A stretch of DNA of 56,893 nucleotides, counting the filler, from Platydemus manokwari (taxonomy: Eukaryota), in the NCBI GenBank assembly GCA_037951405.1. It is 4 parts of 4 records of this genome, joined end to end, with 100 filler letters (N's around TTAATTAATTAA, not from the genome) between each part and the next. Parts side by side here need not be neighbours in the genome. Positions count along the whole stretch, not along the records: positions 13,199 to 33,128 come from JBBMOY011689177.1; 3 more parts are not named here. The stretch is one strand, 5' to 3'. Made by a program: the position numbers and the translations under genes. Position 1 is the first letter of the stretch, and every line of letters starts with the position of its first letter. The notes below the pieces were generated by a model that was given only the letters and a program-made list of their open reading frames with translations, made no database searches and was not told the DNA's origin. Shown one piece after another: positions 1,786 through 33,128 of the stretch.

Positions 1786-3170
1786 CCGATGTAAAGATGG
1801 CCAGCTGCCAGACTGAAGCCAAGTTTTGGTTATGAGTTGGGACATTGTATTAAATTACTTATTCGTATTGAGTAGTACACGTGTTATTGGAAGTGAAGTT
1901 ATTATGTAAATGTGTGATAGTAAGCAATGAAGCTATAACCTTTGAATTTTGGAGTCAGTAATGATTTGTTTATTCAGAATTAGATGCCAACAATATTCGA
2001 AATTATGTTATCAAAATTGCCATTAATTATTGGACTTAGTAGATCGATATCAAAACATATTGATTATTATTATTATTATTGGGTTGTAATTAATGAGTTA
2101 AATTTTTTATTTTGTACCGAGACATATCAGAATCGACAAATTTTCTAACCGATTCTGTGGCTCTCATAGAAAAAAACACACAAAAGTCTGTTGATAGGCA
2201 AAGCATATCATTTATAATCTTAACTTATCCTTCAGAAATGTATTCATATATTTCCTTCACTTATACGTCCATGTAATATATGTCAATGGATTGAATTGGT
2301 TTTAGGATTTCTCGCGACAATATTTGTATTTCAAACGAAACCCTGGACTAATTTCTCCAAACTTTTTATTTTCTTCTTTCATTGCGGGTGTGGTATATCG
2401 ATTGTGGGAACGAAATTCAATGAATATATTACAGGCTAACTAATTAACACGACAAGTACATTCAAGCAGCTCAGTGAGCATTTAATGGATTTCCTGTGAT
2501 AAATGAGAACTGAAATTGTAAAACATTTTGTGTTTCGAAAAATTATAATGAAACTTGTGATTTAAACACTGTTTTCTATACGCATGCGAATTGGAATTAA
2601 TCTACATCACAAAATCATGTGTTATTGTTGAAAATAATTTTTAATATATTTCACTTAAAACTTCATGAATTCTGTTACAATAATCAAAGTGGCGTGTATT
2701 GAAGAAATTAGAAAAACCAATTCTCGCAAAGTATTTATTAAAGAAAAAAGAATACATTATTGTTTTTTTTAATATTTCTAATTTGACCTAATTTTTTTAT
2801 ATTAAAGAAATTGTTGGTACAATAATTGGCTCAAATTAAAGAGTCCTAAAATGAAATTTTAAATTTGTTGAGTGTATTGCAAAATTCTATATAGTTTATT
2901 TAATATATTATATTCTTTAAAAATATTTTGAATTTTTTATTTAAGTACTAAAGATGAATATTAGTTGTTCGAAATCAATTATTAAATACACTAGAGCATA
3001 AAACCTTCTAAAAATTGTTTATTTGAAAAAATTAAAAAAGTAGGTCGAATTGCAATTTATTGAAAATTAGCGAGGACTCCTTTTTTAATATTCAAAGAAA
3101 ATTGACAAATATTTTCAATTTTTAAAATTATTTTATAAAAATAAGCAATGATATTATTAAAAATATCTGT

Positions 3171-3439
3171 AATTAACTAACTTGATTTATAATTATAAAC
3201 ATATAAAGTTATAAACTGAAACAATCATATAGAAGTGTTGTGCTTAGAATAGAAACTTGGTTTTAAAACTATGTTTTGTCACTATTAGACATCTTAAAAA
3301 TGAGATATTAACTGAATTATACGAATAAATCCAACATAGCGGTTATATATAAAATTAAGTTATAAAATTATCCCATGCGCGAAAATTCATTATAATGAAA
3401 GTAGGTCAAAGGACTCTTTTATTTTAACTTAAGCCCAAT
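3171..3439. repeat. Dispersed repeat family A, copy 1 (probable non-autonomous TE)
   Basis: aattaactaact.gatttataattataaa...aacttggttttaaaacta...gatattaactga...catgcgcgaaaat.cattataa..aaagtaggtcaaaggac...ttaacttaagcc recurs at ~20650-20895 and partly at ~37053-37246. Flanking similarity also at ~3040-3090 vs ~19950-20000. Confidence 0.8.
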
Positions 3440-13198: not shown

Positions 13199-16100
13199 TT
13201 TGTTTAAGAATAGTATAATTCTTTATATATAAATAATATCATTAATATCGTGTTAAATTTTTTATGAATGGCTTTATGTAATAAAATCATTTCCGAAGAT
13301 TGAGCACAAAACATCGTTATTTATATGATTTTAAAAATGACATTAAAATTAACATTAATAATTATTTTAGAATTGGTGAATTTCATTATAATAATAACTA
13401 ATATTAGATATTCAAATAATCTTCAGCTAATGCAGTTCATGTAATAGTAAAATTCATCATGATCGATAAAGAATTTATGTAATTTAAAAATTATATTGAT
13501 GACAGTATATGACAAATTATTTCTGTTATTTGATCTTATATTTGGCTTTTTAGAATATACCGATTAGATTATCAGAGATATTGTGCGATGTATCGCATTA
13601 TAAATTATTGAATTATTGTAAATTAATAACATATTTCTTCACTGAAGCATGAATCTGATGAAGTTAAGTGGTTTTATGTATTGAAAATTTGTCAATCTTG
13701 TTGAAGAACTGAATTGCGTGAGACCTGGCCAAACACTTTTGAGTCTCCACCATCGAATCCGGGATAGCTGTATGAAGAGTGGATACATGATTATTATACC
13801 AATGTTGTTATGGTCATGCAACCTCAATGTTAGTTGGCTTTTTACAAGTTGGCGAAAGTAAAAGAAATATCTTGAAATGCATTCTGTGTAGCTCGCAGGT
13901 TGAATGTAAAATTTGAATAATATTGCCGATTTCTCTGAATGTTTTCTCTAATCTGTTCTACTTTAAAAAATATGTTGCAAATTATTTGTGCTACAGAATT
14001 TTGTGCGATTTTTCTGCCTATTCTATAATTTAAATAATGAAACGTTTAATTTTATCAAGCGAAAGAGCAAAGACAATTTCTATCATTAATTGAAGCAAAT
14101 AACATTATTGGATGTTGATGACGTTATCAAAAATCGTGCAGTATTGTAGTTCACCCGGAATTTCTAACACGATAACCTTGTGAATTAATTAAGAAAATGA
14201 AAGGATTAAAATCACTCGCAGTAAGTGTGCAATATCCAAGGCCTTGAACTTTTCTCAATGATCGATTTTTTGGTTCAGACTCAACAATATATAAATGCAC
14301 TTTTACTCGATTATGATCAATAATATAAGTGACGATATATCGACTCGATGGCCTAGCGGGCTTATTTTCGTTAGAAATGTTTTTTGCATGATGCATAAGT
14401 CATTAAATCTACGATTTTCTATTAAAACATGGAGTATCGGTCCGTGTCACCATAGGAACAATTAAGACCGCTAACTCAATTTTCATCATTTTATCCAGAA
14501 TTGATTAGGGATTTGTAAATAATTCTGTAAATAATGGGAAATTTTCCCTTGTATTTGAGTTCATAGTTACGCTTCACACCTGTAAAAAATTATTTATGAT
14601 ATGAATACGTAGTCGGTAATATAGAAATTTTGTTACAATTTTAATGTTACTTAAAAAAAAATCTATTCTTATTTTATTTTACTCGTTCGAATTGTTTGTG
14701 ACATTGAACTCGCGATTTTGCGGGTTTTAAACCTAGGGCCACATGAATCATACTTTATACAATAAACCACTGGATTTTACGCATCTGATTTTGCTTTTTT
14801 ACTGAAAATTATCAAGTACGTCATAGTTTTCAAAGATCATTTAAAGGTAATTTCTTTCAGAAGTAAAGTTAAAATGAGCTTGGGAATAATGCAATAATTG
14901 AAACTGTTGCAAAAGGTTGGAATAATATTCTTCAATTCACTTGTAGGTGTTAACCAAGTTAATTCAATACTAGCTTTTGAAGAGCAGCGTGGAGGATGAG
15001 GTTGTCGCCAAGACCACAAAGTCAACTCCAGGACAATTTGAAACATGAAGTCATATATCGAGTCTGCTTGATATAGAATGAGCACAAGTAATGACATTTT
15101 TATAGAATTCGTCAATATCTTAACAACGAGAAAGTTTGATCGAGAATATAAGATAATTACTGAGGTATGTCTAGCACTAATGGGAAACACAACAAAAGAC
15201 CTCGAAGCCCAGACAAATTAAGAACAGGTATTTCGATCCAATTTAAATGTTGTACAAAACATAAATTTACTGATTATTTGATTTCTGTGTCTGTTTTGCT
15301 CATGTAGAACTATCGATTATCGTACAGTGTTATTTATATTAATTCTATCATAAAAGAGGAGGATATAACATTTTTATAATGAAATAGTCTCGTAATATCG
15401 AATACCGACATCAAAATGGTATAAAATCAGAATGATAAAAAATATTTGTTCATAAAAAACACAAATATTAAAAAAAATAAATGTTAAATAAGCGATAGAG
15501 AAAAGATACCAAGTATTACAAGAATAAAAATGAATAATTTCATTCAATACGACTAACCGAAATAATTATAAACAAGACAGATTTTTGAAATGTATAATAA
15601 GTATGAAAATCTTGCCACTTTCACAATTTCAGGGCAATCAATTAATTGACGAATTTTAGAATCGACAATGGAATCAGTGACAGGTAAACAAGCTACTAAA
15701 GAATCACTAGAACATTACCAAGGAATTGTTTCAGAGATATTAGGAAACATTTTGAGAGGAAATAGATGAATAAAATGAAATTTATCTGAGAATCTTGTGA
15801 GAATTTGAGAACTATTTGAAAAATATTTGATGGTATTGTTTATTAGTTGATTGTCGCTCAAAGAATCATGCTTTGAGCATTTGTGTTTTTATATATGAGA
15901 TCTTGCGTTTACTTCAAGATTGTGTCTTCATTTTTATATTAAAGCCATTCTGTTAGTAAATATTATTTTAAAATTTTGCCGTAATCAGGAAGTGGATAAT
16001 TTATTATTATGGATTTACAAGGACATTAGAGACTGATAAGAAGGAAATTTTAACATTTGATAAACTGCCAAGGTGAACAAAAGCTTGGATATAATCTCTA

Positions 16101-16545
16101 AATTATAATCTATTAACACACTTTTAATCCAGCACTAGATAAAAATGGTTATGGTTTTATTCATTTTTTCTGATCATTTTGGATGGATTATGGTGGGGTT
16201 ACTTGATAGAAGCCTATCAAATTTTTAAAAAAGCGAAATTTAAACTTTTATTAGCGGTGTTAAGTAGGCATCGATATTAACGACATTTTATTTGAGGTGA
16301 TATTAATCTTGTGATATGCACTAAGGTATTTAAATATTATTATTTAATAGCTAACGTTGCTATAATTCTGGTTACGATCACTAGTACATGTATCGTTATG
16401 TAAATATATACACGGTGTGAAAATTGGGTTTATATTAAGAAGTCAGCACATGAACGAGTGACATAAATTCAATACAAATATGGTAATTTAATATAAACAT
16501 AAAACGCACATTAAAAAGGATTTTCAAAATTAATACCTGTACTTA

Positions 16546-18120
16546 ATGATCCAATCTTTTTTTAATTCTAAATTCTATCCATATGGGTGCCTGGTTGCTC
16601 TGGTGCTTTTAGGGATTTCGATGGTGAATTGATTTTTTGGAAATTATTTGTATTTCAACTTTACAGGGAATATGGCAAGAAAGCATTTATTCAACCTTGC
16701 CAAATTTGAAAGAGAAATTAAATGTAAGTTACGAAACCATGGGGAAATTAATAGCTGTTCGGAACTCAGGTAGTGTGGTGGCATTATTGATTATAGGATT
16801 TCTGTATGATACATTTCCAATATATGTTCCTTACATGATGTTTGGTGAATGTTTTTTGGCTGGAATCTGCACGATAATTATTCCTTGGTGTACTAAATTT
16901 TGGATTGTGGCACTTTTTTTCTTTATCCAATCAGGATCGCAAAATGCACTGAATAATGGTGAGGATTAATATCATTGTATTAATATTGATCATTTTTTCA
17001 CTTTGCCTTAGAGTTATGGATAAATACTCAAAATTTTTATAAGAATATTTTTAGACAATATTGTTTTCTGTTATCAAATATTTATCTTTATTAAATTACT
17101 TTTCATTTAGGGGGTCAATTGACCATTATGAACTTATTTAAAGAAAAATCAGTGGGTAAGATGCAATTATATCATCTCGGATACGGAATAGGAGGACTTC
17201 TTTCTGGATTCATTTGTCAGCCATTCCTTCCGAATAAACCATCTTCTTCAGGCAAAATCACGAAATATTGCAAAACGATTCTCGAAAGTCAAAGTAATAA
17301 AGCTGCAGAACTCAATTACATCGGTAATGTCACAACATTAGAAATAGTCGATAAAAGCATGTTCGAATATATTTATCTCATATCTGGACTCATTAGTATT
17401 ACCAACTCAATAATATTTGTAATTTTCGTGAGTTTCAGAAATCCCATGTCTTCGCAGAACAAAATTAAACAAAAGAAAGAATCATGGTTGACGAAAATTC
17501 AACCTAATTATATAGCAAATGGTAAAACCCTTATTGGTGTTTCTATGACAATTTTATTATTTATATATTATTTTTTCTACATTTTTGGATTGATGCAATT
17601 TTTTTCCTACCTTATCGTTTACGCTATCGATCCGTGCAAAGAATACTGGATGGATCAAAAAACTGCCGTGTATCTTTTTTCGGTTACAAATGGGTGTTTC
17701 CTTTTAGGAAGAATTTTTGGCAGCTTAATTATTGATTTACATCCTACTCTTATTATTTTGCTATTTAATTCGTTGAATATTATATTTGTTCTTGTGCTGT
17801 TATTTTTCAGTAACAAATACTCGCTAGCATTATGGATTGGTGCATGTGGAATGAGATTTTGTAACTCTATCGTATATCCATCTGGAACGAGTTATACTAA
17901 TCGTTATATAATTGTCACAAGTAGTTTGATATCTATCGCCTTCATTGGTGCAAATGTAGGAGAAGTTCTCGGACCGTTAATTGGGGGTTTAGTAGTGGAT
18001 AATTATCCATCATATTACCTATTTTATCATACTATAACCTTTTTTACCTTGTTCTTGATCGTTATAATAATTATAGTTATTTTGGGGATGAAGATAGGAT
18101 TAAGAAAATTTGGAAATTAG
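16546..18120 (+). CDS. Major facilitator superfamily transporter, MFSD4/NaGLT1-like, 459 aa, 3 exons
   Basis: Exons 16546-16623 (MIQSFFNSKFYPYGCLVALVLLGISM), 16667-16958 and 17111-18120. GT-AG introns of 43 and 152 nt with matching phases; 1380 nt total. Motifs STLPNLKEKL, GFLYD, MQLYHLGYGIGGLLS, FLLGRIFG, SIVYPSG, LGPLIGG and about 12 hydrophobic segments. TATAAA at 16492; AATAAA at ~18183. Confidence 0.88.
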
Positions 18121-20649
18121 ATGACACTGTCAACTGATTCAAAAATTGAACTTCGGAAATTATAATTGATTGTAATAGCATAAATAAACATTGATTCTGA
18201 TTTTCTTATTGTGTTAAAAGTAAATCGAATTGAAAAGTAAACATCGATAAACATTTCAAAGCCACTTTGCTTATGATGTCTAATTTCATATTGAAATTCT
18301 TAAAACTATCTTGATTATAAAGCCCACCTCAAGGTATATTTTATATGGATTGACTGCTGAGAAAGTTCAATAAACTGAAACTATTGAAAAAAATAATACA
18401 AGAATAATGAATTACTCACTGTGAGTTGACGAATGAAGTTTAATAAAAATGTGTTATGATTTGGTATTGAAATCTGCGATAAATTAAAGTGGCCCACCTA
18501 TTAATTTCTTACAACATTAAAATTAAAAGCGCCACGGGAAACTTTTTTTCTAGCCTTATAAGAAAATCTATTTGTTTCACATGAGTGTTTATCCTTTAAG
18601 TAGTTGATATACCTTGGCCTTAAGGTTTTTATATTTTCACTCTATGGTGGAATATTTGAATTGGTGATAATTCTCTCATCTTTACCAGATTGTTTGAGTT
18701 CTTTTTGAAGGCCACATGAGTATTATTTCTGATTTTGTTCTTTTTTTGGGATCTCAGTCGTCAATAATGTTGAGATTATGAAAGTGGCAAGAGTAGTGTT
18801 ACCTATGTAAATGTCAAAGTTGGCCTCATTTTATTATTAATAATTTCATGCTTGATTGATACAACTTTATCAAATCTTAGTTGGGGTTTCTAAAAATAAG
18901 ATTTTATAAACATTTTTGAATGATTTTTAGTGATTCAATGTATAAAAGTATTTATCACTGTATATCAGCAGTGAATAATTTATATTAAGTGTCTGTAAAA
19001 AACTGTAAGATGATTGTTTGGAATATTAATTTTTTATTCGCATTTTCTTCAACGGGCAACTATTCCGAAATCCGATGTTGAAAATAATAATTTCCAAATA
19101 GTTTAGATAGAAATTAGTGAATAAGAATAATGATAGTTTTAGTTGATAATAATTATGATTTTAATGATAAATTTAAATATTTAAGTAAATGGTAATATAT
19201 TATGTCATTGAATTAAAATTAAAATTAACTTGGATAAAATAAGTTTAATAACAATTAAACTTATGATTCGATTGGCTACTAAAAATATAACAATGAAATA
19301 AAATTAAAGCCATTATCCCGAAAATAATAGGAAGAATTAGACTAGCATGACAACCCGATAGGGATACTTTCTTTTTAAAATGAAAAAATCAACAACAATA
19401 AACATTGTAACCCATTATTTTCCTTCGCTCGGTAACCCACTATATAAAGCACTTAACAAACAATGCCTTTACCCTTTAATTAGAAACCACTAAACCCTTA
19501 AGTTATTCCAGAAGACAGAATATTCGGTTTCGCCGAGCCAAGTCAATGTTTCAATCAAGTCAAGCAGTTTTAAATTCCATGTAATTGCTCAAGGAGAGAA
19601 TAGAAATATTTCGAGTAAAGATCAAAGCAATATAGTTCTTGTAAAATTTTATATAAGCCATATTCTTTTTAATTAAAGTTGAAATTCCTTGAAATAGACA
19701 CCTCCTCAATATCGATGAAAAGGCTTGTTTGGTGTACGCTATTTTACCCTGAATTGCAGATTTATTTCCAACGGTTTTAGTACATAGTGCAATATCAAAA
19801 CTCTAATTATATAAAAGTATTGAGTTTTGCATATTTGATATTTATAATACACATATTTAAGTACTCAGAAAGAATTTTAGTTGTTTTAATCAAATATTAT
19901 GTATAGGAGTTTTAAAATATACTCAAAATTAATTATTTGAAAACCGGTCAAAGTAGGTAAAAATGAAATTAATTGAAAATTAGCTAGGATCTCTTCTTTA
20001 ACATTAGACGCAAATGGAACGATATCTGATTTTTAGAGTTGTTTATAAAAAAGTGTTGAAATTGCTAGGAGGATTGCTAGGAGCTAGATACTTGTGTTTT
20101 ATCTCAAAATAAGTATATTAATATCTATTTAATATATTGAACGGAAAGATCCAAAACCTGTCGATACTATAATGGAATAAAGATTAAATAGAAATTTTAA
20201 ATTTAAAATGATACTTTTATTTAATTGTAGGTTTGTGAAACAATGATTTCCTATTAAATCTAAAAATTTCATTAAAATATGATTACAAAATATGATTACT
20301 CACGAAAAATCATTTCATTAAAATTGGGTCGAAGGATTCTTTTCCTTAACCTAAGTCAAAATACTATCAACCCTTATTAATTCAAACTTCAATAATCTGA
20401 AAGCTTTATAGTCCAAAAAAATATTTATTTCGTCAATTTTCGAACATTTTCAGACAAATTTGATCCATAAATCCGAAACTTTATGATGCGCAATCGGAAA
20501 GTTCTTTTTTGAATTAAATTTATAATAATTCTGAAGTTTCGGATGTTGTTTAAATAATAAGTTTGTTTACAATTTTAATTTATTTATTTTAATATATTTT
20601 CAATTTTTACAATTATTATATAAAACTAACTAGTGTACTAAATATGTGT

Positions 20650-20895
20650 AATTAACTAACTCGATTTATAATTATAAAAATTTAAATTTAAAAACTCAAA
20701 TAATCATAAAGAAATGTTGTGATTAGAACTTGGGAACTTGGTTTTAAAACTAAAATATAAGATATTAACTGATTTGTACGAATAAAGCAAACATAGCAGT
20801 TATATATATAAAATTAAGTTATAAAATCATGTCATGCGCGAAAATCCATTATAACAAAAGTAGGTCAAAGGACCCATTTTATTAACTTAAGCCAA
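20650..20895. repeat. Dispersed repeat family A, copy 2
   Basis: Colinear high similarity to 3171-3439. Confidence 0.8.
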
Positions 20896-20919
20896 ATATC
20901 CATATACCTAGAAAAAGAA

Positions 20920-22150
20920 CAGAAATTTACTACTCATCCATCTCGAATGAATTCGATAAATGGTTACGTGATGAAATATCATTATCATTACAAAACCATG
21001 GGCATTTGGACCAAAACTAAAGGTTGATGACCTGCAATTCAACAGAGGATGGCTCTATAGATTCAAAAATCGATTTAATCTGAAATTGAATGTTCTCCAT
21101 GGATAAACAAATTCAATGAATGATGTTGATGTTTCAGGCTATAGAAAAAAAATGTTTGAAAACTTGGTAGGAAATGACCCAGAAGTTATACACAATATAT
21201 ATGAAACTAGACATTTTTTCAAGCATTTTCTACAAGAACAATTTTATAAAATGAAATGAAAGGCTCAAAACAATTTAAAATTAGAATAACCATAGCTTTA
21301 TGTTCAAATATTAGTGGATCAATTAAAATGACCCCCTTTGTTATTAGATTTAGCAAGAAACCAAGATGTTTTAAAGTATTTAATGTTTCAAGATACTGTA
21401 TTACCACGCAAATTCGAATGCATGGATGACCACTGATTTGTTTAATTGTTTTCTGCTGCATCTTGATGATGAACTGCGAAAATGCAAAAAAAAATATCTT
21501 CTTGATACTGCTCTAAGTCATATCTTGAAGAAACGTTTTCAGGACACTGAAGTTATAATGATTACAAAGAACTCAACTACTCATCTTCAATCCATGGTTG
21601 CAGGTGTAATACAAAATTTATTATTATTACAGAAAAGGTTAGTAGTTCATTACATGAACTCGCTTGATCAAACAAAAGCCTTTGTTGTTAATCTTAAGAA
21701 AGCTATATTGATACTTCACGAAGATTATTAAGATATAAAAGAAAAACCCATCAAAAATTATTTCAAAAAGGTTGCGATTATTAAAGGTCTTCACGGTTCT
21801 TGAGACACACAAGAATGAACCTGACCATATAATGATTGAAGAGGATATTTACCAAACAGAAGAGGTCATTCATGATGATGAAATCATTGAACTGTGTCAA
21901 GAAGAATACACTATTGAAGATGTTGTACTTAGTGTTGAAGATGATCAGGTCAATGACAGTTACAACATAAGTCCAAGCAATTTATTCCAGGCAATTGAAA
22001 TTGTCATCAAAGCAAGTTCTTCGTCAAACAGCTCTACTTAAAATATAACCAATAATACAATAAAAAATTTAAAAGACCTCAAAGTTTATTTACAGAAATT
22101 TATTCAAAAGAAAACTCTATAAAAAACTTAAGACGATTTTTTAAATAAAT
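20920..22150 (+). mobile_element. Decayed Tigger/pogo (TIGD-like, DDE_1) transposase pseudogene
   Basis: Frameshifted or stop-interrupted motifs in the expected order: IHNIYETRHFFQ (N-x-DETGLF), GSKQFKIRITIALCSNISGSIKMTPFVIRFSKKPRCFK, NSNAWMTTDLF...LLDTALSH, KNSTTHLQSMVAGVIQN (NTTS-LQP-D-GVI), acidic TEEVIHDDEIIEL tail and KTLDDFLNK end. TIRs not found. Confidence 0.85.
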
Positions 22151-23829
22151 AATTGTCTTTTTCATAATAATATCATCATTGATATGGCGATCAGTTAGAT
22201 TTTAAATTCCTTCAGGAAGTTATTCTAAAATTCAAATCCATTATTCATTTGATACATTTTGATGTTGACCATGATTTGACACATGTCGCATTACATACAA
22301 CTTTAGACTCTGACATTATTGTCAGAGACTTTAAAAAAAGTCTTAATGGAATCTTGGACTTGAAAATATCTTATGACTTGGTAGAAAATTTTTAGAGGAA
22401 TTGTTCCAATAACTGAGATAATCATACACACTTGCCGATACGACTTTTACCTTAACTTCATAAATCTTGGTATTCTTGGTTCCTGGAAGCCTCAAAAGGT
22501 TTTCAATATTTTAGGCTTCGATAAAAAGATTATATATATACTTCCTGTGAATAAAAAAGTGATCCGGTCCGCCCCTAATACCTATTTGAGTAACATTTGC
22601 AGTGATAACACAATAAAATAAGTAACAACTGCATCTTTATCTCTCTCTTCTAAACTATCATCAACAAAACTAATTGACCCAAAATAATTATATCGTCTTG
22701 GAAAAAGCCTACTTGATTTACTTCTTTAATATATAAATAAGTAGAAGGGACTACTTTCTCCAGATAAATTTTATCAGTTATTGGGCATTCACATTTGTTA
22801 ATATAAAATCAGAAATATTTATTTTATTTTCAATTAAATGAGTAAAGCCTTACTATTATCAAATCCTAATAGTGATCCTAAAGTAATGAATTTTATATTT
22901 TTCCTTCCGTATTTAGTTTTCATTTTAAGATTCATAATAGAGTTTCCAGAATCTTGTCTAATAGTTATATCTTTATCAAAATAATCTCATTCATTGGATA
23001 TTTGTGTTATTCTTTCTTTTGATAATCTTTTTTTAAATCCGTGACAAATGATTTGATATTCTTCTTGATAAACAGTTTTTGAAAATATTATTAAATTGTC
23101 ATTGGCTAAAGATGTTGATATTAATAAGTAGTACGCCAAAATGAAGACAAAACCAGATTACAACTCGAATCTGCCAGTTGGTGAATCGTGGTATCATCAA
23201 TTAAAAGTCCTGACTGGTTCTGGTGACTAAAAATGAATGTCAAACCAGTTTATCGATTTGCAATTTTCATCAGCTTAGTAAAAAACAATTCTTTTATAAT
23301 AAAAATACTCATTTAAAATCATTTTAATTTTTAATGAATCTATTTTGAAACGATGATACATTCAAAATATCATACTCATTTTCATTTTTTATAAATTGTT
23401 TACAATCTAATTACTTAAGGTAAAATGAATGAAGGAATAGAAAAGATAAATCGAACTTAATGATACATAGTTTTAATGAGAAATTTAAACAGTTATGTCG
23501 ATGTTAATTACTAAAATAATGTTATTCTAATGACTTGTTATGGGGTTGCTTGCTAATTTTTATTATCAGTCTCTATATACTATGTTTTATTGTGGATCAA
23601 TGCCGTTCTGACAAGTCTCTGTGAGCTCCGATCAACCCCTTAAGGTACACTCTATAAACCCTATTTTATAATCTTCTATCTTCATCTCGCTATCAATACT
23701 ATATGGAGATAGTAAGCAGCAATGATCCAAATGCTATATTTTATAACTATCAGTCTCAAATTTTAATGTCCTATACCTATATCCTATCTAATCAACAACT
23801 CAACAAACAATTGATACAGTAGTGTTTAT

Positions 23830-24260
23830 TAATTACGAAATATACACCAAACATAAAATTATAGTCAAATTGTTTGGTTAAAACTACACTATACGACGAA
23901 ATAATGAACCTAGACGATAACACCTACAACTTCTGGAAAAGAACGGTTTCTAACTTTAACTCAAGAAGTAGAACCTTTACCCATAAGAGTTTATGGTGAG
24001 ATAAAGCTCTATAATTTGATGATACGACGGTACAATATATAATATCGATTATCAGTTTACAGTATCAATCGAACTCACTTAATATCCTGACAAGAACACA
24101 ATCAATATAATTACTTTGAACAAAAATCAAAAGGCATATATCGGTAGGCTTCTATGGCAAATATGTATCCTTATCTTCAAGTATTCTTCTTAATGTTAAA
24201 TTGACTTCACGTAATTCAACATAATGGTTTCTGTAAAATGACCGAGTTGTGATTATTTCA
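23830..24260. repeat. Diverged dispersed repeat family C, copy 1 (other copy ~31780-32200)
   Basis: Shared colinear blocks: taaaactacact, acaact.ctgga.aa.ga.acggtt..taac.t..actc, aacc..ttacc, aagag.tt, tacaatatataatat. Boundaries approximate. Confidence 0.5.
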
Positions 24261-26146
24261 ACTCCTATATATATGTTTTGTCGGCGCTATTTAATCTCCC
24301 CGAATAAAATAATTGGGTACAATTTTTAGAAAAATGCTTCCTCTTTAATTCATGAAGTTTCTTTAATTTTTTCCGAAGTTATCTTTGTTGCCATTATATT
24401 AATCAGTTTATATATAAAATACATTTTATTTTAAATAAATACCGTAATAAAATATTACATAATAATACATATATATTTTCCAGAAATGTAGGATTTTAAC
24501 ATGACATTAAAATTATTGTTACAACATAAAAATATATAGCTACAATGCCATAAACTAAACAAAATAGTTGCTTCGTGCAATAACAACTAAATGTTTCAAT
24601 TTTCAGCTCTTCATAAAAATTAAATTTCGTCACAATCGTAACAATTTTCACCAGCTGAAACTTAATTAAATAAATTTTAATTACAACACAATAATAAAAT
24701 TATAAATTACTACACATAGAATACTTTAATACACAGAATAAACAAAATATTGTCATAATTACACAGGATATTTGTCACATTTGTCAGCACATCTACAAGA
24801 ACCCCAACAATAAAACCATTTCTAGATATTTACATACAACGAAAACAATTGCGAGTCAATGTTATTCAAATCTAGGCATCTCATTTAATAAATATTATCT
24901 TATTAATTTTAATTAACTCAAGTACTTACCTCTAATATTGATGATTTTATTTAATTTTTGGATCAATATTTCCTAACTTACATATAGATTTGCTTAAATT
25001 CAAAATTTATGATAAACGTTAATGATATTTTCAAGGCATTAAATGAAAACTCAAATCTAAATTTCAAAGATGGTTAGATAGGATTATTGAATTAATATCA
25101 CTGAACAATGAAATAATTTAAAGGTTTAAAGAGAAGGATATATGGTTTCTTCCATACAACGAAATTTCGAAATTTAAACAAATACCGACATATTGAATAA
25201 TGATTACGATATGAAATCTACAACTGAAGATATTCTTGATGTAGTGATTAAAATAAGATGATGAGTCATTCAATAACTTTTCAATCGACTACTGGAATAC
25301 TGCTGGTAAAAATATATATTTATTATTTCAAAGTTTAAAACTGAGATTTATGTTTTATTGAAGACCACATTTAAAATTTATCTAAAATTTAATGTAATGA
25401 TCAAAGTTTGAATCTGTCGAACTGTTATTTATCTGAACAGAGTTTTATTCTTAACCTGAGTTGATATGATAGTTATTTAGACTATATTATGATTGTTGAA
25501 AAGGTAAATAAGATAATTGCTGTGTAAATTTTTTATTTTTTTTAAAGATAAGATATATCAAAACCATAAAAGAACAATACAACAATAAGTTCAATGTCCG
25601 ATGCTTCATTTAAGTGACTTATTGGAAGTTCAAGCAGATGGAAAAGATAAGTAAATTTATGATTAAAATATGATGGCTTGAATTTGAAAAATAATTTTCA
25701 AATTTGTCGTCATGAGAATTGAATTAATTTATGAAAAAATACTTATACAAAAAACGTAAATTACCTTTACTATTCTGCAATCAGGTAATTTTATTTTAAG
25801 AATAATTTAAGAAAAATTTTATAATTGGTAAAACCGAAGAACAAATCACCACATTGATTCCATTGCGTATATATTTTCTCTATTAATATATATACGTGTG
25901 TGTGTGTGCAAACCATTATATTAATAATTATGTATGTGTAGAAATGTGTTGCTATTTCATTACGATTTCGAAGATATATATTGAGGAGCATACGAATCAG
26001 TTTATTTATAGCATCAAAAAGAAACCTTATTCATTTCTTTGTAAACCTACTAATAATCTAATGACTAGAAATGTTATTTATCAAAAACAGTAATGTCATA
26101 TCAATAAATATCAAATAGAGACAAAACTCAATTTATTGAATTTTCA

Positions 26147-29100
26147 TTAATTCATTTGTTTTTTACAAATGAATTGTTGACGTATTCCACAGTTCGTAAA
26201 TTTTGTAATAAATCCGTTATTGTCTTTTCGAACATAAGAACAGAAGTGAAACGGTCGTAAAACTGAAGGGCGTATCCTAATCAAATAAAATAAAACTAGA
26301 ATTAATGCAAATCTAATTTACCTAGAATTAAGCCTGATTAAAGATTTCGCATCAATACCATTAAGTAAATTTATAGCACTACCAAGTAAACTTAATGTTT
26401 TCCCAATTTTGTATTTCGATCCACTAATAATGTTCAATCTTCCACCTAAACGTTTTGTTACTTCACCGACAATATAAGATGCTTTATTGACATGTGCTGA
26501 GAATTGTACATTTATAGCTCTTTTCATTCGGAAATTTTTCTTTTCCCACATTTTAGTTCCTGAATTATATGTGTATCCGCTTTTAATGAGCTTATTCATT
26601 TTAGAAAACGTATCAAATGTTTGTACAAACCAATTTATGAAAGCCGTGTCAATTTTATCAAACTGATTATTATCTACTGCTGTTATTATCATTTGGATAT
26701 TATCCTTTATATTTTGACGACTTCCTTCATCGATGTATTGTAAAAGATTTGTCCACTGATAATGTTTCAATAATTTAACTTTTTGTTTAAATTCTGCTTT
26801 TGTCTTTACATCGAAGTTGGTATTGGAAATTTCATTTCCACTACTTTCTACAACGCGCTTTTCCCATATTTTCGTTTCAAGATTGTACTTGTAACCGTTC
26901 TTAATAAAGCCATTTATTTTAGATAATGTTGTGAATGTTTGCATAAACCAATTAAGGTAAGTCATATCAATTTTATCAAACTGATTATTATCTACTGCTG
27001 TTATTATCATTTGTAAATTATCTTTTATATTTTGACGACTTTTTACATCAATATACTGCAAGAAATTTTTCCATTGATAAACTTTCAACAATTTAATTTT
27101 TTCTTTTAATTCTGATTTTGTCTTTGTATCGAAATTGGTTATGATATTTCTAGTTCCACCGGTTTTCACAACATGCTTTTCCCATACTTTTGTTTGGGAA
27201 TTAAATTTGTAGCCTTTTTTAATGAAGCCATTTATTTTTGAGAGATTATCAAATACTTGTAGAAACCAATTATAACTTCCTTTATCCAGTTCGTCAAATT
27301 GCTTATCATCAACAAATCTTACTATTTCTTTTATTTGTTGTCTTAATTGTTGCCGAATATTTTCTCCGATATACATCATTAAAGTTTCCCATTGAAATTG
27401 TTTTAATAGTTTCACTTTTTCTATCAAAGTAGATAATAATTTTCCATCTAATGCGTTTAATTTCTTAATTTTTAAATTTTCTTTATTAATCAAATCGATA
27501 ATATTTTGTATTTCATAAACCCAATCGAATTCAATGACGATTGGTTTACCATTTGATTTTGACATTACTTTTCTAATTCTTTCAATCCACAAGCTTTGAT
27601 CGATTCCGGATACTCGTTTGATAAGTTCAACCCAATTACTTGGAAGACTAAATTGCAATGAATTAATAATTTCTGTTGATGTTTGGGGAACGTTAGCAAT
27701 CTTTAATTTTTGTAAGTTGAAAATAATATCATTTAACCATTTCAAATAATCTAAATTAATTTTATCATACTTTTTAGTTTCAACAAAACCAATAAATTCT
27801 TTTATCTTTTTCATCATCACAGCTCTCTTAGTTTCATCTATATATTTAGCAAGTGCATTCCAATTAATTTGTTTCAAAAGATTTCTGTATTGCAATGATA
27901 ATTTCACTAAAATATCTTTGTTGCTATTATTTGGTAATTTTGGAGGGGCCTTTATATTAGCAAGTCTCTTGAAATTTCGAAGAACTTTCTTAATAAATTT
28001 TAAAAGTGGAATATCCAAATTTTTGATATCTTGTTTTTTAACCAAATTAATATATTTCTGGATTTTCTCTGAGACTTCAACTCTTGAAGTAGAATGAAAA
28101 TATTTAAGAAATTGAACCCATTTCATTTGTTCCAAAAGTTTGACAATGTGAACATATTCCTTAAGTAGACCACCATTATTCTTCGATTGATAACCAGAAA
28201 CATTCCCTTTCTCTTTATCTGTAATTGCTGGCAATTTACTTTGGACTGTTTTCACTACTAGTTGAACAAAATTCATTAAATCAGGAGTAATTTTATCAAA
28301 TTGTTTGCTAGTAATGAAAGAAATAATTGTTTTGATTTTATTCGTAACTTCGAGTCTTTTATGTTGTGGGAATTGATGAGTAATTTTGTCGATTGGTATT
28401 TTCATCAAATAATCAATAATCGTTGGATTTGGAAGTTTATATTTAACTTTGTCAATGGTAGCAGTGATAAATTTGATTAGATCAGGAGTAATTTGATGGT
28501 ATTGTTTTATTGTCATCAAATGAATAATGGATTTGAATTTTTGAATAACTTGTTGTCTATTAGGTTGTGGTATATGCTTGAGTATATTTTCCAGAGGCAT
28601 AATTTTCAAAAATTCGACAATATTGATAATTCGAGGTAATTCCTTATTACCTTTTGGCAATGATTTATTATCCACTGGCAATTTACTTTGAACCGTTTTC
28701 ACTACTAGTTGAACAAAATTCATTAAATCAGGAGTAATTTTATCAAATTGTTTGCTAGTAATGAAAGAAATNNNNNNNNNNNNNNNNNNNNNNNNNNNNN
28801 NNNNNNNNNNNNNNNNNNNNNNNNNNNNNNNNNNNNNNNNNNNNNNNNNNNNNNNNNNNNNNNNNNNNNNNAAATTCGACAATATTGATAATTCGAGGTA
28901 ATTCCTTATTACCTTTTGGCAATGATTTATTATCCACTGGCAATTTACGTTGAACCGTTTTCATTACTATTTGGATTTTTTCAATTAAATTTATTATAAA
29001 TTGAAGTAATTCTTTATTTATTTTGTTGAATTCGTTTTTCTGAATAAAATTTTCTAATAATTTGACTTTTTCTATTGTTTTTGGTCTGTTATTTGGTTCA

Positions 29101-30936
29101 ATTATTTGAAGTAGATTTTCCCAGTTGATTCTTTGTAGAACATGTTTTATTCGATTAAATTTTTCGGCTTCTTCATCTTCTTCAATGTCAGCAATATCAC
29201 AATCGCATGTTTGTCTAATTTTGATTTTTCTTAAATAACGAATTATTTCATGCATAATCTCTAATAAATCCAAACTAATTTTCTTCACATCTCTCATCTT
29301 TACAACTTTTATAAAATATTTAATTTTATCAATAATTTCTGGTCGAATTTGTCCATGAAAATCTGTTATTAGTGATTCCCAATTCAAAGTTTCTATTAAT
29401 TTTACGAATTTGAAACTGGTATCTAGAATGACTTTTTCTTTTTCGACATTTGTTTTTTTCTTATATGTTAGCCGTATTCTCAATTTTCCCAATGATGTAA
29501 TTATTTCATTTATTGAATTAATGAGTTCAATGTTAATCTTTTCAAATTCTTTGTTACGAATCCTATTAATAAATAACCGGATTTGTCCAGAAATTTCTCT
29601 TTTTTTACTTTCTTCTATGTTGATTATAATGTCTTCCCATTTCAAATGTTCTAATAATGAAAGATATTTATTAGCAGTATCCTTTATTAATTGTGCTCTA
29701 TTTCTGTCTACTCCCTGATCAAAGATAATTCTTATTTTAATTTTTAATATTTTTTTAATTATATCACTGAAAAATTCAATCAAATTTCTATCAATTTTAT
29801 CTACTTGATTTTTTCGTATAAAATTAATAAACATCTTTATTTTTGTTATAATTTCCACACTTCGTGCTTCATCGTAACGTTTAACTAAATCTTCCCAATT
29901 AATTTCTTCAAAAAATCGAATACATTTCAACACGTTTTCTATTGTTAATTTTTGCTTTGCGACATCTTTTTTAACATTTACGTAATATTTGATTTTGAAA
30001 GTTATTAATTTCGATACGATTTTAGTGATGAATTCAATTGTATCACTATAAAGATTATCAACGTTTTTCCCTTTCACTAATCTAATAAATGTATTGATTT
30101 TTTCCAAAATATCTGGTTGTTTACATTTGTCGAAATAGTTGAGAAATTCATCCCAATTTGTACTTTCAAGTATATCAGAATATTTCGATAAAATTTGTAA
30201 AATTATTTTTTTCATTTTTTCATTTTTGATATCACTGATTTTTATTAATTTTCGTTGTGTATGTGATTTCAATTTGATTCGGAACTTTTTTGGTAATCTA
30301 AAACACAAAGATCATATTTCTTCAATTATATTTATCATTATAAAATTTGTTGTTGATAATTTTTACCGTATATTTTCATATTTATTATTAGTGGTTAATT
30401 TTAATTAAATTTTTACTTTCTTAACTTAAATTTAATTATTCTTTTAGCTGATTAAAAGTAATAAATATGTTTCACCTTCCAAAGTGTCCCCCACTGTAAT
30501 CGACCATCCAATATCTATTTTTCGTTATTTTATTAGCCACTGGTTTCAAAACAGTCTGTAATTAAAATTAAAATTCATTAAAAAAACATTTCTTTACGAG
30601 ATCAATCTAACCATATCGTTATCGCTAAATGGAGCTGAATTTTGTTGTTGAGTTTTTTGTTGACAAATGACTTGAGCATCTTCATAAGTTGATTTGAATT
30701 TCGACACATAGTAACACGCTTGGTTTGGCACACAAATTGTTTCTAAATAAAAAATAAAATTAATTATTGTCTAATATTAATATATTAATGTTTCTATTTC
30801 TCATACCAAATTCATTTTCTTTACCGTCGGCATGAATGGCCATACCTACAGAAATTAAATGAATCGTCGAAAACATTAGCAATGAAACAATAGTCTTACA
30901 TATAATTGTAAATGACAATAATGTTATTGCTAACAT
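26147..30936 (-). CDS. Large secreted protein (>=~1,525 aa): signal peptide + N-half of C-type lectin-like domain + >=13 helical repeats + RMKR site + C-half of C-type lectin-like domain
   Basis: Exons (minus): 30936-30900 MLAITLLSFTII; 30845-30807 CMAIHADGKENEF; 30742-30612 ETICVPNQACYYVSKFKSTYEDAQVICQQ...; 30555-30476 TVLKPVANKITKNRYWMVDYSGGHFGR; 30297-26322 (giant exon, ORFs 28755..30308 and 26318..28882 joined across the N gap); 26276-26147 RIRPSVLRPFHFCSYVRKDNNGFITKFTNCGIRQQFICKKQMN*. All five introns are GT-AG with matching phases. AATAAA at 26137-26132. Confidence 0.85.
28772..28871. other. 100-N assembly gap inside a collapsed 447-nt coding tandem repeat
   Basis: Both flanks match internal parts of the 447-nt unit (gtaatgaaagaaat at 28311 and 28758; the VDNKSLPKGNKELPRIINIVEF block on both sides). 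No TTAA linker. Confidence 0.85.
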
Positions 30937-30973
30937 TTCTTATCGCAATTATTTTCCTCAACATCTTCGAAGC

Positions 30974-30981
30974 TATTTATA
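30974..30981 (-). promoter_or_regulatory. TATA box of the split-lectin repeat gene
   Basis: TATAAATA on the minus strand, 38 nt upstream of the ATG at 30936. Confidence 0.55.
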
Positions 30982-31779
30982 CGAATTGAATAAAGTAAAG
31001 GATTCCAAAATATAAATCTCAAGAGTCAAAATCCAATAATCAACTCAAAATAAGTGTTTTTATTAAATCGTGGTACGGTTTAAGATTTTGAAAATCTCGG
31101 AAACAATTCCTACTTTTAGACTCTTGATTTTACAAATTTCAATCAACTTATAAAATAACCCTATCACTGATATATAACACTTGTGTTTTGAAATGTATAT
31201 TTGAAGTTTTTCGTATATGCTATATGCAATTGAAAATTTCGATCGTATTGATTCAATATTATATTAAAATTAGTCGTCGTCTCAAGTTCGAAAGGTTTAG
31301 AAAAATGGGTGGAATTATTCATAAATTAATTAAGTGATTTTCGTATTTTAAATTGGTATAAATCTTTACTAATAATATTGGACATTATTTATCTTTATTT
31401 TTGGAAGTTATAATTTATATATGCTGTAATTTGATGTTTCTTTTTTTGAACATTATCTATTTATCTATAACTTACGTACATATTAAAAGATTTAGAAAGA
31501 TTTTCTAACCAAATTAATTAAACTATTTCTTCGTAATTTTGGATAATGATCGTGGTCAAATTGATTATAAAGACAATAGAAATATTATTTATTGTTTATG
31601 TTTTGAAGAAATTAATATCAGTATAAGAATAAGTGTAGTAGTGGTGATATATTTTAATTAACTTAGTTATGAGTCTCAAGTTATTTAAACAATGAGCTAT
31701 GTTTATAACAATGGATATGAATAATGACTTTATGATCCCTATATGATTGAGAACTATAGCTTGCTAATACAAATATTTA

Positions 31780-32200
31780 TTAACAATTAACAACAATACA
31801 AAACTGATAAACAATAATAACATAAAAATTACAAATTTTAAAACTACACTTTACATCAACTTATGCATATAACAAAGCCTAACAACTCCTGGACAAAGAG
31901 ACGGTTGATAACCTGCACTCTTGGAGCAAAACCGATTACCTTTCAAGAGCTTTGAGCAACAAACTCGATAATAGAAAATAAAGCAATACAATATATAATA
32001 TGAATCAGTATTTTACGCAAATGGATCTTACTTTTGGGTTTTCCAATAAGATACTGGGTATATAAAAATACCATCCTTCTGCACTGAATGGTCTTCTATT
32101 GTGCGCTGGTCAAATTGTGAAATAATGTTTTCTTCTGTAAAAGATAATTGGTTGACACGTAACGGCAACTTCGTATAATTGTGGTTGTGGAATAATAGTA
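31780..32200. repeat. Diverged dispersed repeat family C, copy 2
   Basis: Same orientation and colinear blocks as 23830-24260. Confidence 0.5.
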
Positions 32201-32414
32201 GTGAAATTATGGCTTAATTAATTGCGACTGCTGTCTTGTATAGGCAGTGTGAATCACTCGCAGATATTCTCTGCCATTAAACCTAATTCCAGCGAATTTA
32301 TTATTTTATCGATAGAATTTATTCACTGGTGAGAAAAATTCTCTTAGAATAAATTTATTTCACTAAGAAAGTATCTCTCGATTAAATTTAATCTAGTGGT
32401 TATTGTATTCTGTA

Positions 32415-32485
32415 ATAATAGATGACAAATTTGTCGATGTTATAGCGCGATAATAGATGACAAAATTTGTCGATGTTATAGCGCG
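32415..32485. repeat. Near-perfect 35/36-nt tandem duplication
   Basis: ataatagatgacaaa(a)tttgtcgatgttatagcgcg x2, head to tail. Confidence 0.95.
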
Positions 32486-33128
32486 ATATCTTATTATTTT
32501 AGGGAATTTCGACGGATATGCTCTTGGTGATTTTACTGATATTATTATTTTACGTATATATAAATAATAATTAATATAAGAACCAATATTTTAGGCTGGT
32601 TTTTGCTCAAAAATTCCAAAAGAACCCCAACAATATTATTAATTTATATTGAACGGTTGTTTAGGATTTGGGAATCTGAATTTAAACGATAAATGAGAAT
32701 TTATATTCGAATTTGAAGTTTTTGTTTATACTAATGTAATATTTATTTTGACCTACTTACACCAGCTTTTGGACTATTTTTACTGACTCTTCAATAAATA
32801 AATTTAAAAAGGTGACTGAAGAAAAACAATATTCCAAAATTTTATTAAACCAAAGTATCGGTGAATTTTCTAAAACCATTATTAAAACCTGTAATTCAAA
32901 ATAATAATAAGCAAACATTAGCAATAGCAGACGAAAATAAAAATTTAAAAGCTATTGAAAATAAATAGTAAATGCAAATATTGAATATATATTGAACAAA
33001 AAACAGATAAAATTAATAAAGAAATAAGAATAAAATCCTGAAAATTTCGTATAAAAATAAATATAAATATAAAATTAAATTAAAAAAGAAGATATTTGTA
33101 AAAGTTTTTTGGGATATTTAATTAAAAT

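Follow-up and report, generated by a model that had tools for sequence, protein, structure and literature searches.

A helical-repeat array of Platydemus manokwari that appears to interrupt a C-type lectin-like domain in a predicted secreted precursor

The DNA described here (the window, meaning the whole stretch analysed) comprises 56,893 nucleotides of Platydemus manokwari (GenBank assembly GCA_037951405.1) and joins four parts of four records end to end, with 100 filler letters between each part and the next. Its minus strand carries, within the part taken from JBBMOY011689177.1 (positions 13,199 to 33,128), a tandem array of small helical units whose length is strictly kept. The explanation that best accounts for this array, and that we hold to be rather probable, is a six-exon gene for a secreted precursor in which the array splits a C-type lectin-like domain (CTLD) in two and would serve as a basic scaffold binding polyanions. 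The parts of this explanation differ in strength: the array and the selection acting on its family are shown, the gene model and the split of the CTLD are well supported but indirect, and the proposed function is more conditional.

Results

A tandem array of 86-residue four-helix units

The repeats lie in an open frame that runs on the minus strand from 30308 to 26318 and is broken by an assembly gap of 100 N (28772-28871), located inside the giant fifth exon of the gene described below; the repeat-region piece is AT-rich (GC 24–32%). Upstream of the gap, five units, here termed type A (28959-30197, minus strand), follow one another with an exact 86-residue period, seen by autocorrelation and with a hidden Markov model (HMM). 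A first-pass annotation had placed the Trp codons of five diverged repeats exactly 258 nucleotides apart, and this is what the sequence reads, with CCCA (TGG on the minus strand) at 30152, 29894, 29636, 29378 and 29120. In the 479-residue translated piece (28872-30308, minus strand), the only Trp residues are 52, 138, 224, 310 and 396, and BLOSUM62 autocorrelation peaks at lags of 86, 172 and 258 residues (1.0, 0.80 and 0.81), with all other lags at or below 0.03. Each of these five units consists of a 69-residue core (29991-30197, 29733-29939, 29475-29681, 29217-29423 and 28959-29165, minus strand) and a 17-residue linker.

The repeat HMM, built from the five units and then refined over paralogues, detects 13 complete units and one truncated by the gap (E values of 1e-7 to 1e-24 each), five of them upstream of the gap and eight complete plus the truncated one downstream, in line with the earlier count of at least 13 recurrences. 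The nine downstream units (26591-28771, minus strand; HMM and Tandem Repeats Finder, TRF) comprise the truncated unit at the gap (28682-28771), two Pro-linked units without Trp (28436-28633 and 28235-28426), two further units (27956-28162 and 27698-27904), a divergent unit reading 'SNW..GID..LW' (27476-27682) and three final units (27227-27433, 26909-27148 and 26591-26797). Their period varies from 66 to 117 residues and reaches about 106 residues (318 nucleotides by TRF) in the last three, because a GYxYNxxTKxWEK motif has been added after each of them.

The reading frames differ on the two sides of the gap, so that its size is arbitrary. It is flanked by duplicated segments: 28872-28973 matches 28610-28711 at 99 of 102 positions, and 28675-28771 matches 28228-28324 at 95 of 97. 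A recent internal duplication of the Trp-less, Pro-linked units thus surrounds the gap and probably caused it, and the number of units is a lower bound (at least 14).

The consensus proposed earlier agrees with that of 82 aligned units from the window and the paralogous loci, in which W20 is conserved at 95%. The length of the unit is likewise conserved beyond the window: Trp-to-Trp intervals across paralogues measure exactly 86 residues in 37 of 67 cases and 85 residues in a further 7. Units share 26–35% identity with their neighbours in the array and 49–83% with the unit at the same position in paralogues, and this closer relationship to same-position counterparts implies that the array is old and that its positions have been kept individually.

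AlphaFold2 (AF2) modelling of a single unit, using the 82-unit alignment, predicts four helices (residues 5-17, 20-27, 32-47 and 56-76) with a predicted local distance difference test score (pLDDT) of 84.9 and a predicted template modelling score (pTM) of 0.69. The corresponding three-unit model, calculated from 11 sequences in register, shows a continuous helical array (pLDDT 84.9, pTM 0.66) in which the last helix of each unit extends through the linker and a break of 1–4 residues precedes the next unit. Conserved Leu, Ile, Phe and Val positions recur regularly across the 82 units and form the hydrophobic core; Ile (15%) and Lys (14%) are abundant, Cys is nearly absent (0.1%) and the net charge is +3.9 per unit. 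The model scores and the conserved core positions support a folded helical unit and neither a coiled coil nor disorder, the two predictions that the first-pass annotation had named as refuting a folded unit. The models show linkers, mostly of 17 residues and predicted to be helical, joining the units into what would be rigid 86-residue modules.

Relatives of the unit and selection on the family

No named Pfam repeat accounts for the unit: scans of the protein pieces, of all exons and of the 82 single units returned nothing consistent. DUF4042 (PF13251, HEAT-like) was considered and rejected, as only 3 of the 82 units match it, weakly (best E 0.0083). PDB sequences, queried with the protein as well as with the unit profile, showed chance-level matches only, a word-based search of 5.8 billion proteins with one translated repeat piece gave no match, and an ESM Atlas feature search with one such piece gave no usable match. 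Fold searches with one- and three-unit models (Foldseek against the PDB, ESM Atlas shape, VIA-align wide) returned nothing above the noise of helical models, a range that includes the best structural neighbour, SUGP1 433-586 (Z 6.4 and 7.6).

An exhaustive profile search of 1.84 billion representative proteins yielded three matches only, all fragments: P0001 and P0002, which are UniParc entries, and P0003, from a Joint Genome Institute (JGI) metagenome contig of sample 3300031231. P0001 and P0002 are about 50% identical to the best loci of the present genome and thus come from another species. P0001 scores 46 bits on DUF4042 (cut-off 27); this score was rejected as an artefact because it sums three near-identical units of about 15 bits each, and it illustrates how a repeat can pass a curated Pfam threshold by summation.

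Within the genome itself (911 Mb in 1.99 million contigs searched), about 10–12 paralogues are found, with some 12 contigs carrying open frames of 900–1,500 residues. The ratio of non-synonymous to synonymous substitution rates (dN/dS) against three paralogues is 0.56, 0.36 and 0.23, and the family is under purifying selection. A decaying or selfish repeat frame devoid of function would fit the stop codons found in one copy (contig C1586322) and the fragmentary state of the assembly, and is scarcely credible in view of these dN/dS values (0.23-0.56), of the long frames kept in many diverged copies, of a conserved exon structure and of relatives about 50% identical in another species.

At L042 (G000:C1117441:1-10000), two members of the family stand in tandem on the same strand, the C-terminal half of the first ending at about 3084-3200 and the N-terminal half of the second starting at about 6855. 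At L022 (G000:C1586322:1475-1597), the C-terminal CTLD exon is 90% identical to that of the window, an in-frame TGA replaces the canonical Cys C3 and a TAA is also present; this locus is likely a pseudogene of the closest paralogue.

A probable six-exon gene for a predicted secreted precursor

Comparison with the paralogues points to the repeats being part of a six-exon gene that runs on the minus strand from 30936 to 26147 and whose product would be a secreted precursor at least 1,430 residues long. Exon 1 (30900-30936, 37 nucleotides) contains the start codon and a hydrophobic signal peptide (MLAITLLSFTII) and ends in phase 1 at the donor GTAAGA; its start is conserved in the paralogues L002 and L004. 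In the paralogue L041, the equivalent 37-nucleotide exon ends at GTGAGT and reading through it meets a stop codon. The comparison with L041 favours two small exons here over a single first exon that would reach 30846. Exon 2 (30807-30845, 39 nucleotides; ..C-MAIHADGKENEF..), with the acceptor tctgtag and the donor GTATGA, is flanked by introns of 54 and 64 nucleotides and has an equivalent small exon in L041.

Exon 3 (30612-30742, 131 nucleotides; TICVPNQACYYVSKFKSTYEDAQVICQQK...) contains three invariant Cys and would form the N-terminal part of the CTLD; it is 61–95% identical in most of 10 paralogous copies, the weakest showing 51–55%. Exon 4 (30476-30555, 80 nucleotides, ending in phase 2), conserved in paralogues, would continue the domain, with YWMVD at the position of the WIGL motif. 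The repeats occupy exon 5 (26322-30297), a giant exon of 3.9 kb with the acceptor tttgtgttttag, the donor AG/GTAAAT and phase 2 at both ends, the start of which (..KFRIKLK..) is conserved among paralogues and has no in-frame Met. A 45-nucleotide intron (26277-26321; gtaaat...gattag), present with the same phase in L041, separates it from exon 6 (26147-26276), which reads ..FCSYVRKDNNGFITKFTNCGIRQQFICKK, ends in ..FCSYVRKDNNGFITKFTNCGIRQQFICKKQMN and the stop codon, is found in nine paralogous copies and would supply the C-terminal end of the CTLD, with its Cys spaced C-x16-C-x7-C. An AATAAA read from the sequence (26132-26137, minus strand) lies about 10 nucleotides past the stop codon.

All five introns are bounded by GT..AG, and the exon lengths of 37, 39, 131 and 80 nucleotides give matching phases. 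L041, only 42% identical to the window in the repeats, shows the same exons and phases, and in P0002 the last repeats continue directly into the counterpart of exon 6 as one chain. Contigs of sufficient reach carry the repeats between the N-terminal half (10 copies) and the C-terminal half (9 copies), and both halves are more conserved than the repeats (95% versus 73% and 68% versus 42% in paralogue comparisons).

Two probable halves of one C-type lectin-like domain

The exons on either side of the array are, with good probability, the two halves of a single six-Cys CTLD. This assignment draws on several weak and colinear lines, obtained by profile searches exon by exon. Of the 37 PDB matches to an exon-3 profile of nine copies, 31 are CTLDs, aligned at their N-terminal β1/α1 region (best E 0.011); they include CD69, CLEC2D, CD209, snaclecs, CD94 and SP-D. 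The exon-6 profile matches the opposite, C-terminal ends of the CTLDs of PLA2R, bitiscetin and REG4. When aligned with hhalign to the canonical CTLDs of the genome itself, exon 3 covers columns 4-29 of 133 (P 0.0019) and exon 6 covers columns 84-119 of 133 (P 0.0026), with three Cys aligned. For the last 54 residues of P0002, every language-model neighbour is a Lectin_C cluster (scores 0.86–0.88, to be read as a lead only).

The spacing of the Cys is CTLD-like. Invariant Cys are found at positions 3, 9 and 26 of the N-terminal half (C3, C9, C26) and at positions 12, 29 and 37 of the C-terminal half (C12, C29, C37), the latter giving C-x16-C-x7-C. The C0'–C1 distance is 17 residues, as in CD69, and the C0–C0' spacing is 5 residues, compared with the usual spacing of about 10. 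In exon 4, paralogues conserve the motif YW[MIV][VF][DN]. The motifs for Ca2+ and sugar binding are absent: RPS occupies the EPN position, and [FLY]T[NKD], mostly FTN, precedes the canonical Cys C3 in place of WND. The protein should probably not be classed as a sugar-binding lectin.

The positions of the exons support an insertion of the array at the long-loop region of the CTLD, between the WIGL-like strand and the EPN position. In snaclecs, the long loop leaves the core of the domain and swaps into the partner, so this loop tolerates excursions. A literature search on large inserts at the CTLD long loop found no such description, and scans of metagenome contigs with the profiles of the two halves found no relatives. 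The planarian SCARF C-type lectin genes, considered as a possible match, were rejected, since they encode plain dual-CTLD proteins (PMC514892).

Charge, processing and a proposed scaffold

The predicted protein is strongly basic, with 252 Lys and Arg against 152 Asp and Glu and a net charge of about +100 overall and about +4 per unit. After the last unit stands RMKR (26519-26530, minus strand), a furin-type RxKR motif that is kept in six of seven sequences (the window and five of six others), as RKKR, RRKR or RKRR at the equivalent place in L041, L042, L045, L006 and P0002. No RxKR occurs between units, where the linkers read K-I-K-I-R or similar, and the basic segment with which the array begins is no consistent convertase site.

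These features bear on the comparison made in the first-pass annotation with lipid-binding polyproteins (nematode NPA/ABA-1, cockroach Bla g 1). A precursor of this kind would be cut into single lipid carriers, each a small helical bundle. In favour of such a polyprotein are the tandem order of the small helical bundles, whose hydrophobic interior is conserved, a signal peptide indicating secretion and one convertase site. It is nevertheless very unlikely, as convertase sites are lacking between the units, whose linkers are predicted to be helical and of fixed length, and no match to the NPA or Bla g 1 families was obtained with Pfam, PDB sequences, Foldseek or VIA. Moreover, the units are conserved position by position between paralogues, and so are not interchangeable, and their strong positive charge fits polyanions better than neutral lipids. 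Of the earlier interpretation, the folded helical unit without a named Pfam match is thus supported, while the lipid-binding analogy is not.

In the six-exon precursor that we favour, the two CTLD halves would fold together, in cis or between molecules, as a C1–C4 disulfide-locked clasp tying the ends of the array. A furin-type convertase would then cut the conserved RxKR after the last unit, yielding two disulfide-linked chains, and the basic helical array would act as an extracellular scaffold that binds polyanions such as sulfated glycans, mucus or acidic surfaces, for instance in a glandular secretion or in an adhesive or defensive coat. A more tentative extension, which we regard as possible and no better than that, is that the CTLD serves as a covalent clasp and not as a binding module: its halves, some 1,300 residues apart, would close the array into a disulfide-locked loop that the RxKR cut opens, or would link molecules head to tail in trans.

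The tail between the RxKR motif and the C-terminal CTLD half (26322-26518 in the window; 1670-1760 of L041, G000:C426666) is poorly conserved, Gly-rich, cationic and amphipathic, reading for example GLLSGVANLIRGVGRTIGGLFG.. in L041. Its release would presumably yield something resembling a host-defence peptide.

Observations that weigh against the split-domain precursor

Several observations weigh against the precursor proposed here, and they concern each of its parts. For the domain, the hhalign alignment of exon 4 is not significant (P 0.21), only YW being aligned, at the WIGL position (CTLD columns 53-54) and colinear with the other exons; the hhalign probabilities reach only 12–14%, given the short pieces; and neither the separate exons nor P0002 matches Pfam Lectin_C (PF00059), the pieces of 26–43 residues being too short for its 22.6-bit cut-off. 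For the gene model, the only public sequencing run that contains the stretch is a DNA run, and no RNA run does, so the splice junctions are all inferred; furthermore, both boundaries of exon 5 are in phase 2, and this symmetry makes an isoform lacking the array, a compact CTLD of about 113 residues, equally possible. For the assembled protein, the two ends of a straight array with at least 14 units would lie far from each other, and assembly in cis would need bends or hinges. The role of the array as a polyanion-binding scaffold is itself inferred. Finally, the assembly contains at least four distinct COX1 genes, all of them full-length and reading TGA as Trp (G000 contigs C1514745, C1389203, C1344449 and C1440324), which implies that it holds several organisms or large mitochondrial inserts and bears on the ownership of individual contigs.

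Two alternatives gain from these observations. The first is that the Cys-bearing ends are not a CTLD at all and resemble one by chance, being either a pair of small disulfide motifs unrelated to each other or a different split fold. The missing Pfam match, the marginal single values (E 0.011, E 0.18, P about 0.002), the C0–C0' spacing of 5 residues instead of about 10 and the reduction of the WIGL match to YW would all be explained in this way. Yet three types of search converge on the same family and always on the colinear part of the domain, the six Cys are invariant with a C0'–C1 distance of 17 residues as in CD69, and C2-x16-C3-x7-C4 aligns with the Cys of the CTLDs of this genome, so that we give a chance resemblance little credence.

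The second alternative sees the giant exon as a mostly skipped cassette or as an independent nested gene, with an ordinary compact secreted CTLD of about 113 residues as the main product. Skipping would preserve the frame, the CTLD halves are more conserved than the repeats and no RNA run holds the locus. Against this, an open frame of 900–1,500 residues is kept in about ten paralogues with dN/dS below 1, P0002 runs from the repeats into the end of the CTLD, and no half stands away from repeats on contigs of sufficient reach. The conserved start of exon 5 has no Met in the paralogues and so cannot start translation alone. We consider this alternative improbable, to about the same degree as the first.

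Genomic neighbourhood

On the plus strand of the window, a pair of neighbouring open frames at 16637-16969 and 17119-18120 shows matches to Pfam MFS_1, their best relatives being only 54–57% identical and unnamed; both are probably exons of one major-facilitator transporter gene. A 101-residue open frame (21426-21731, plus strand) shows a weak match to DDE_1, the pogo-type transposase family (E 0.0024), and is probably a transposon remnant.

Discussion

The CTLD is among the most studied animal extracellular folds, and its binding functions evolve in the long-loop region. Folded repeats of about 1,300 residues, inserted at that loop and conserved there, would extend the known tolerance of the fold. 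About ten paralogues and a second species retain the insert, which raises the question of whether assembly of the halves takes place in cis or between molecules. The tentative clasp, if true, would represent a new way to build extracellular scaffolds, confined to a single small animal lineage. The unnamed four-helix module itself, with its strictly kept length of 86 residues, is a candidate rigid building block. If the protein belongs to a glandular, adhesive or defensive secretion, the way it binds by charge would be of interest for practical use. Should the gene model be wrong, an ordinary lineage-specific repeat protein remains.

The array shares with generic helical repeat rods (HEAT/ARM-like, spectrin-like) and with DUF4042 an all-helical tandem architecture of fixed unit length. 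ABA-1/NPA and Bla g 1 are likewise secreted and built from small helical units that follow one another in tandem and keep a fixed length, but are cleaved between units, whereas the units described here lack such sites, are position-specific and are strongly basic. The predicted flanking domain has several features in common with CTLDs that do not bind sugar (CD69, NK-receptor-like domains, snake-venom snaclecs): a signal peptide, six Cys with CTLD-like spacing, a CYYxS...(T)(W/Y)xxAxxxC start and a C-x16-C-x7-C ...FICK end. Unlike these, it would accommodate an insert of about 1,300 residues, with at least 14 helical units, at the long-loop region; its N-terminal hairpin is short, and EPN/QPD and WND are absent.

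A further comparison is offered by Mlig-ap1, a protein of flatworm temporary adhesion for which charge-based binding to negative sugars has been shown experimentally (PMC6410801). Mlig-ap1 is likewise large and secreted, and a C-type lectin domain occurs in it alongside very positive repeat regions. These Lys/Arg-rich regions, whose isoelectric point is reported to exceed 14, flank an intact CTLD together with vWD and EGF modules, whereas in the precursor predicted here folded, Ile/Lys-rich four-helix units would interrupt the CTLD; the likeness between the two is one of functional analogy only.

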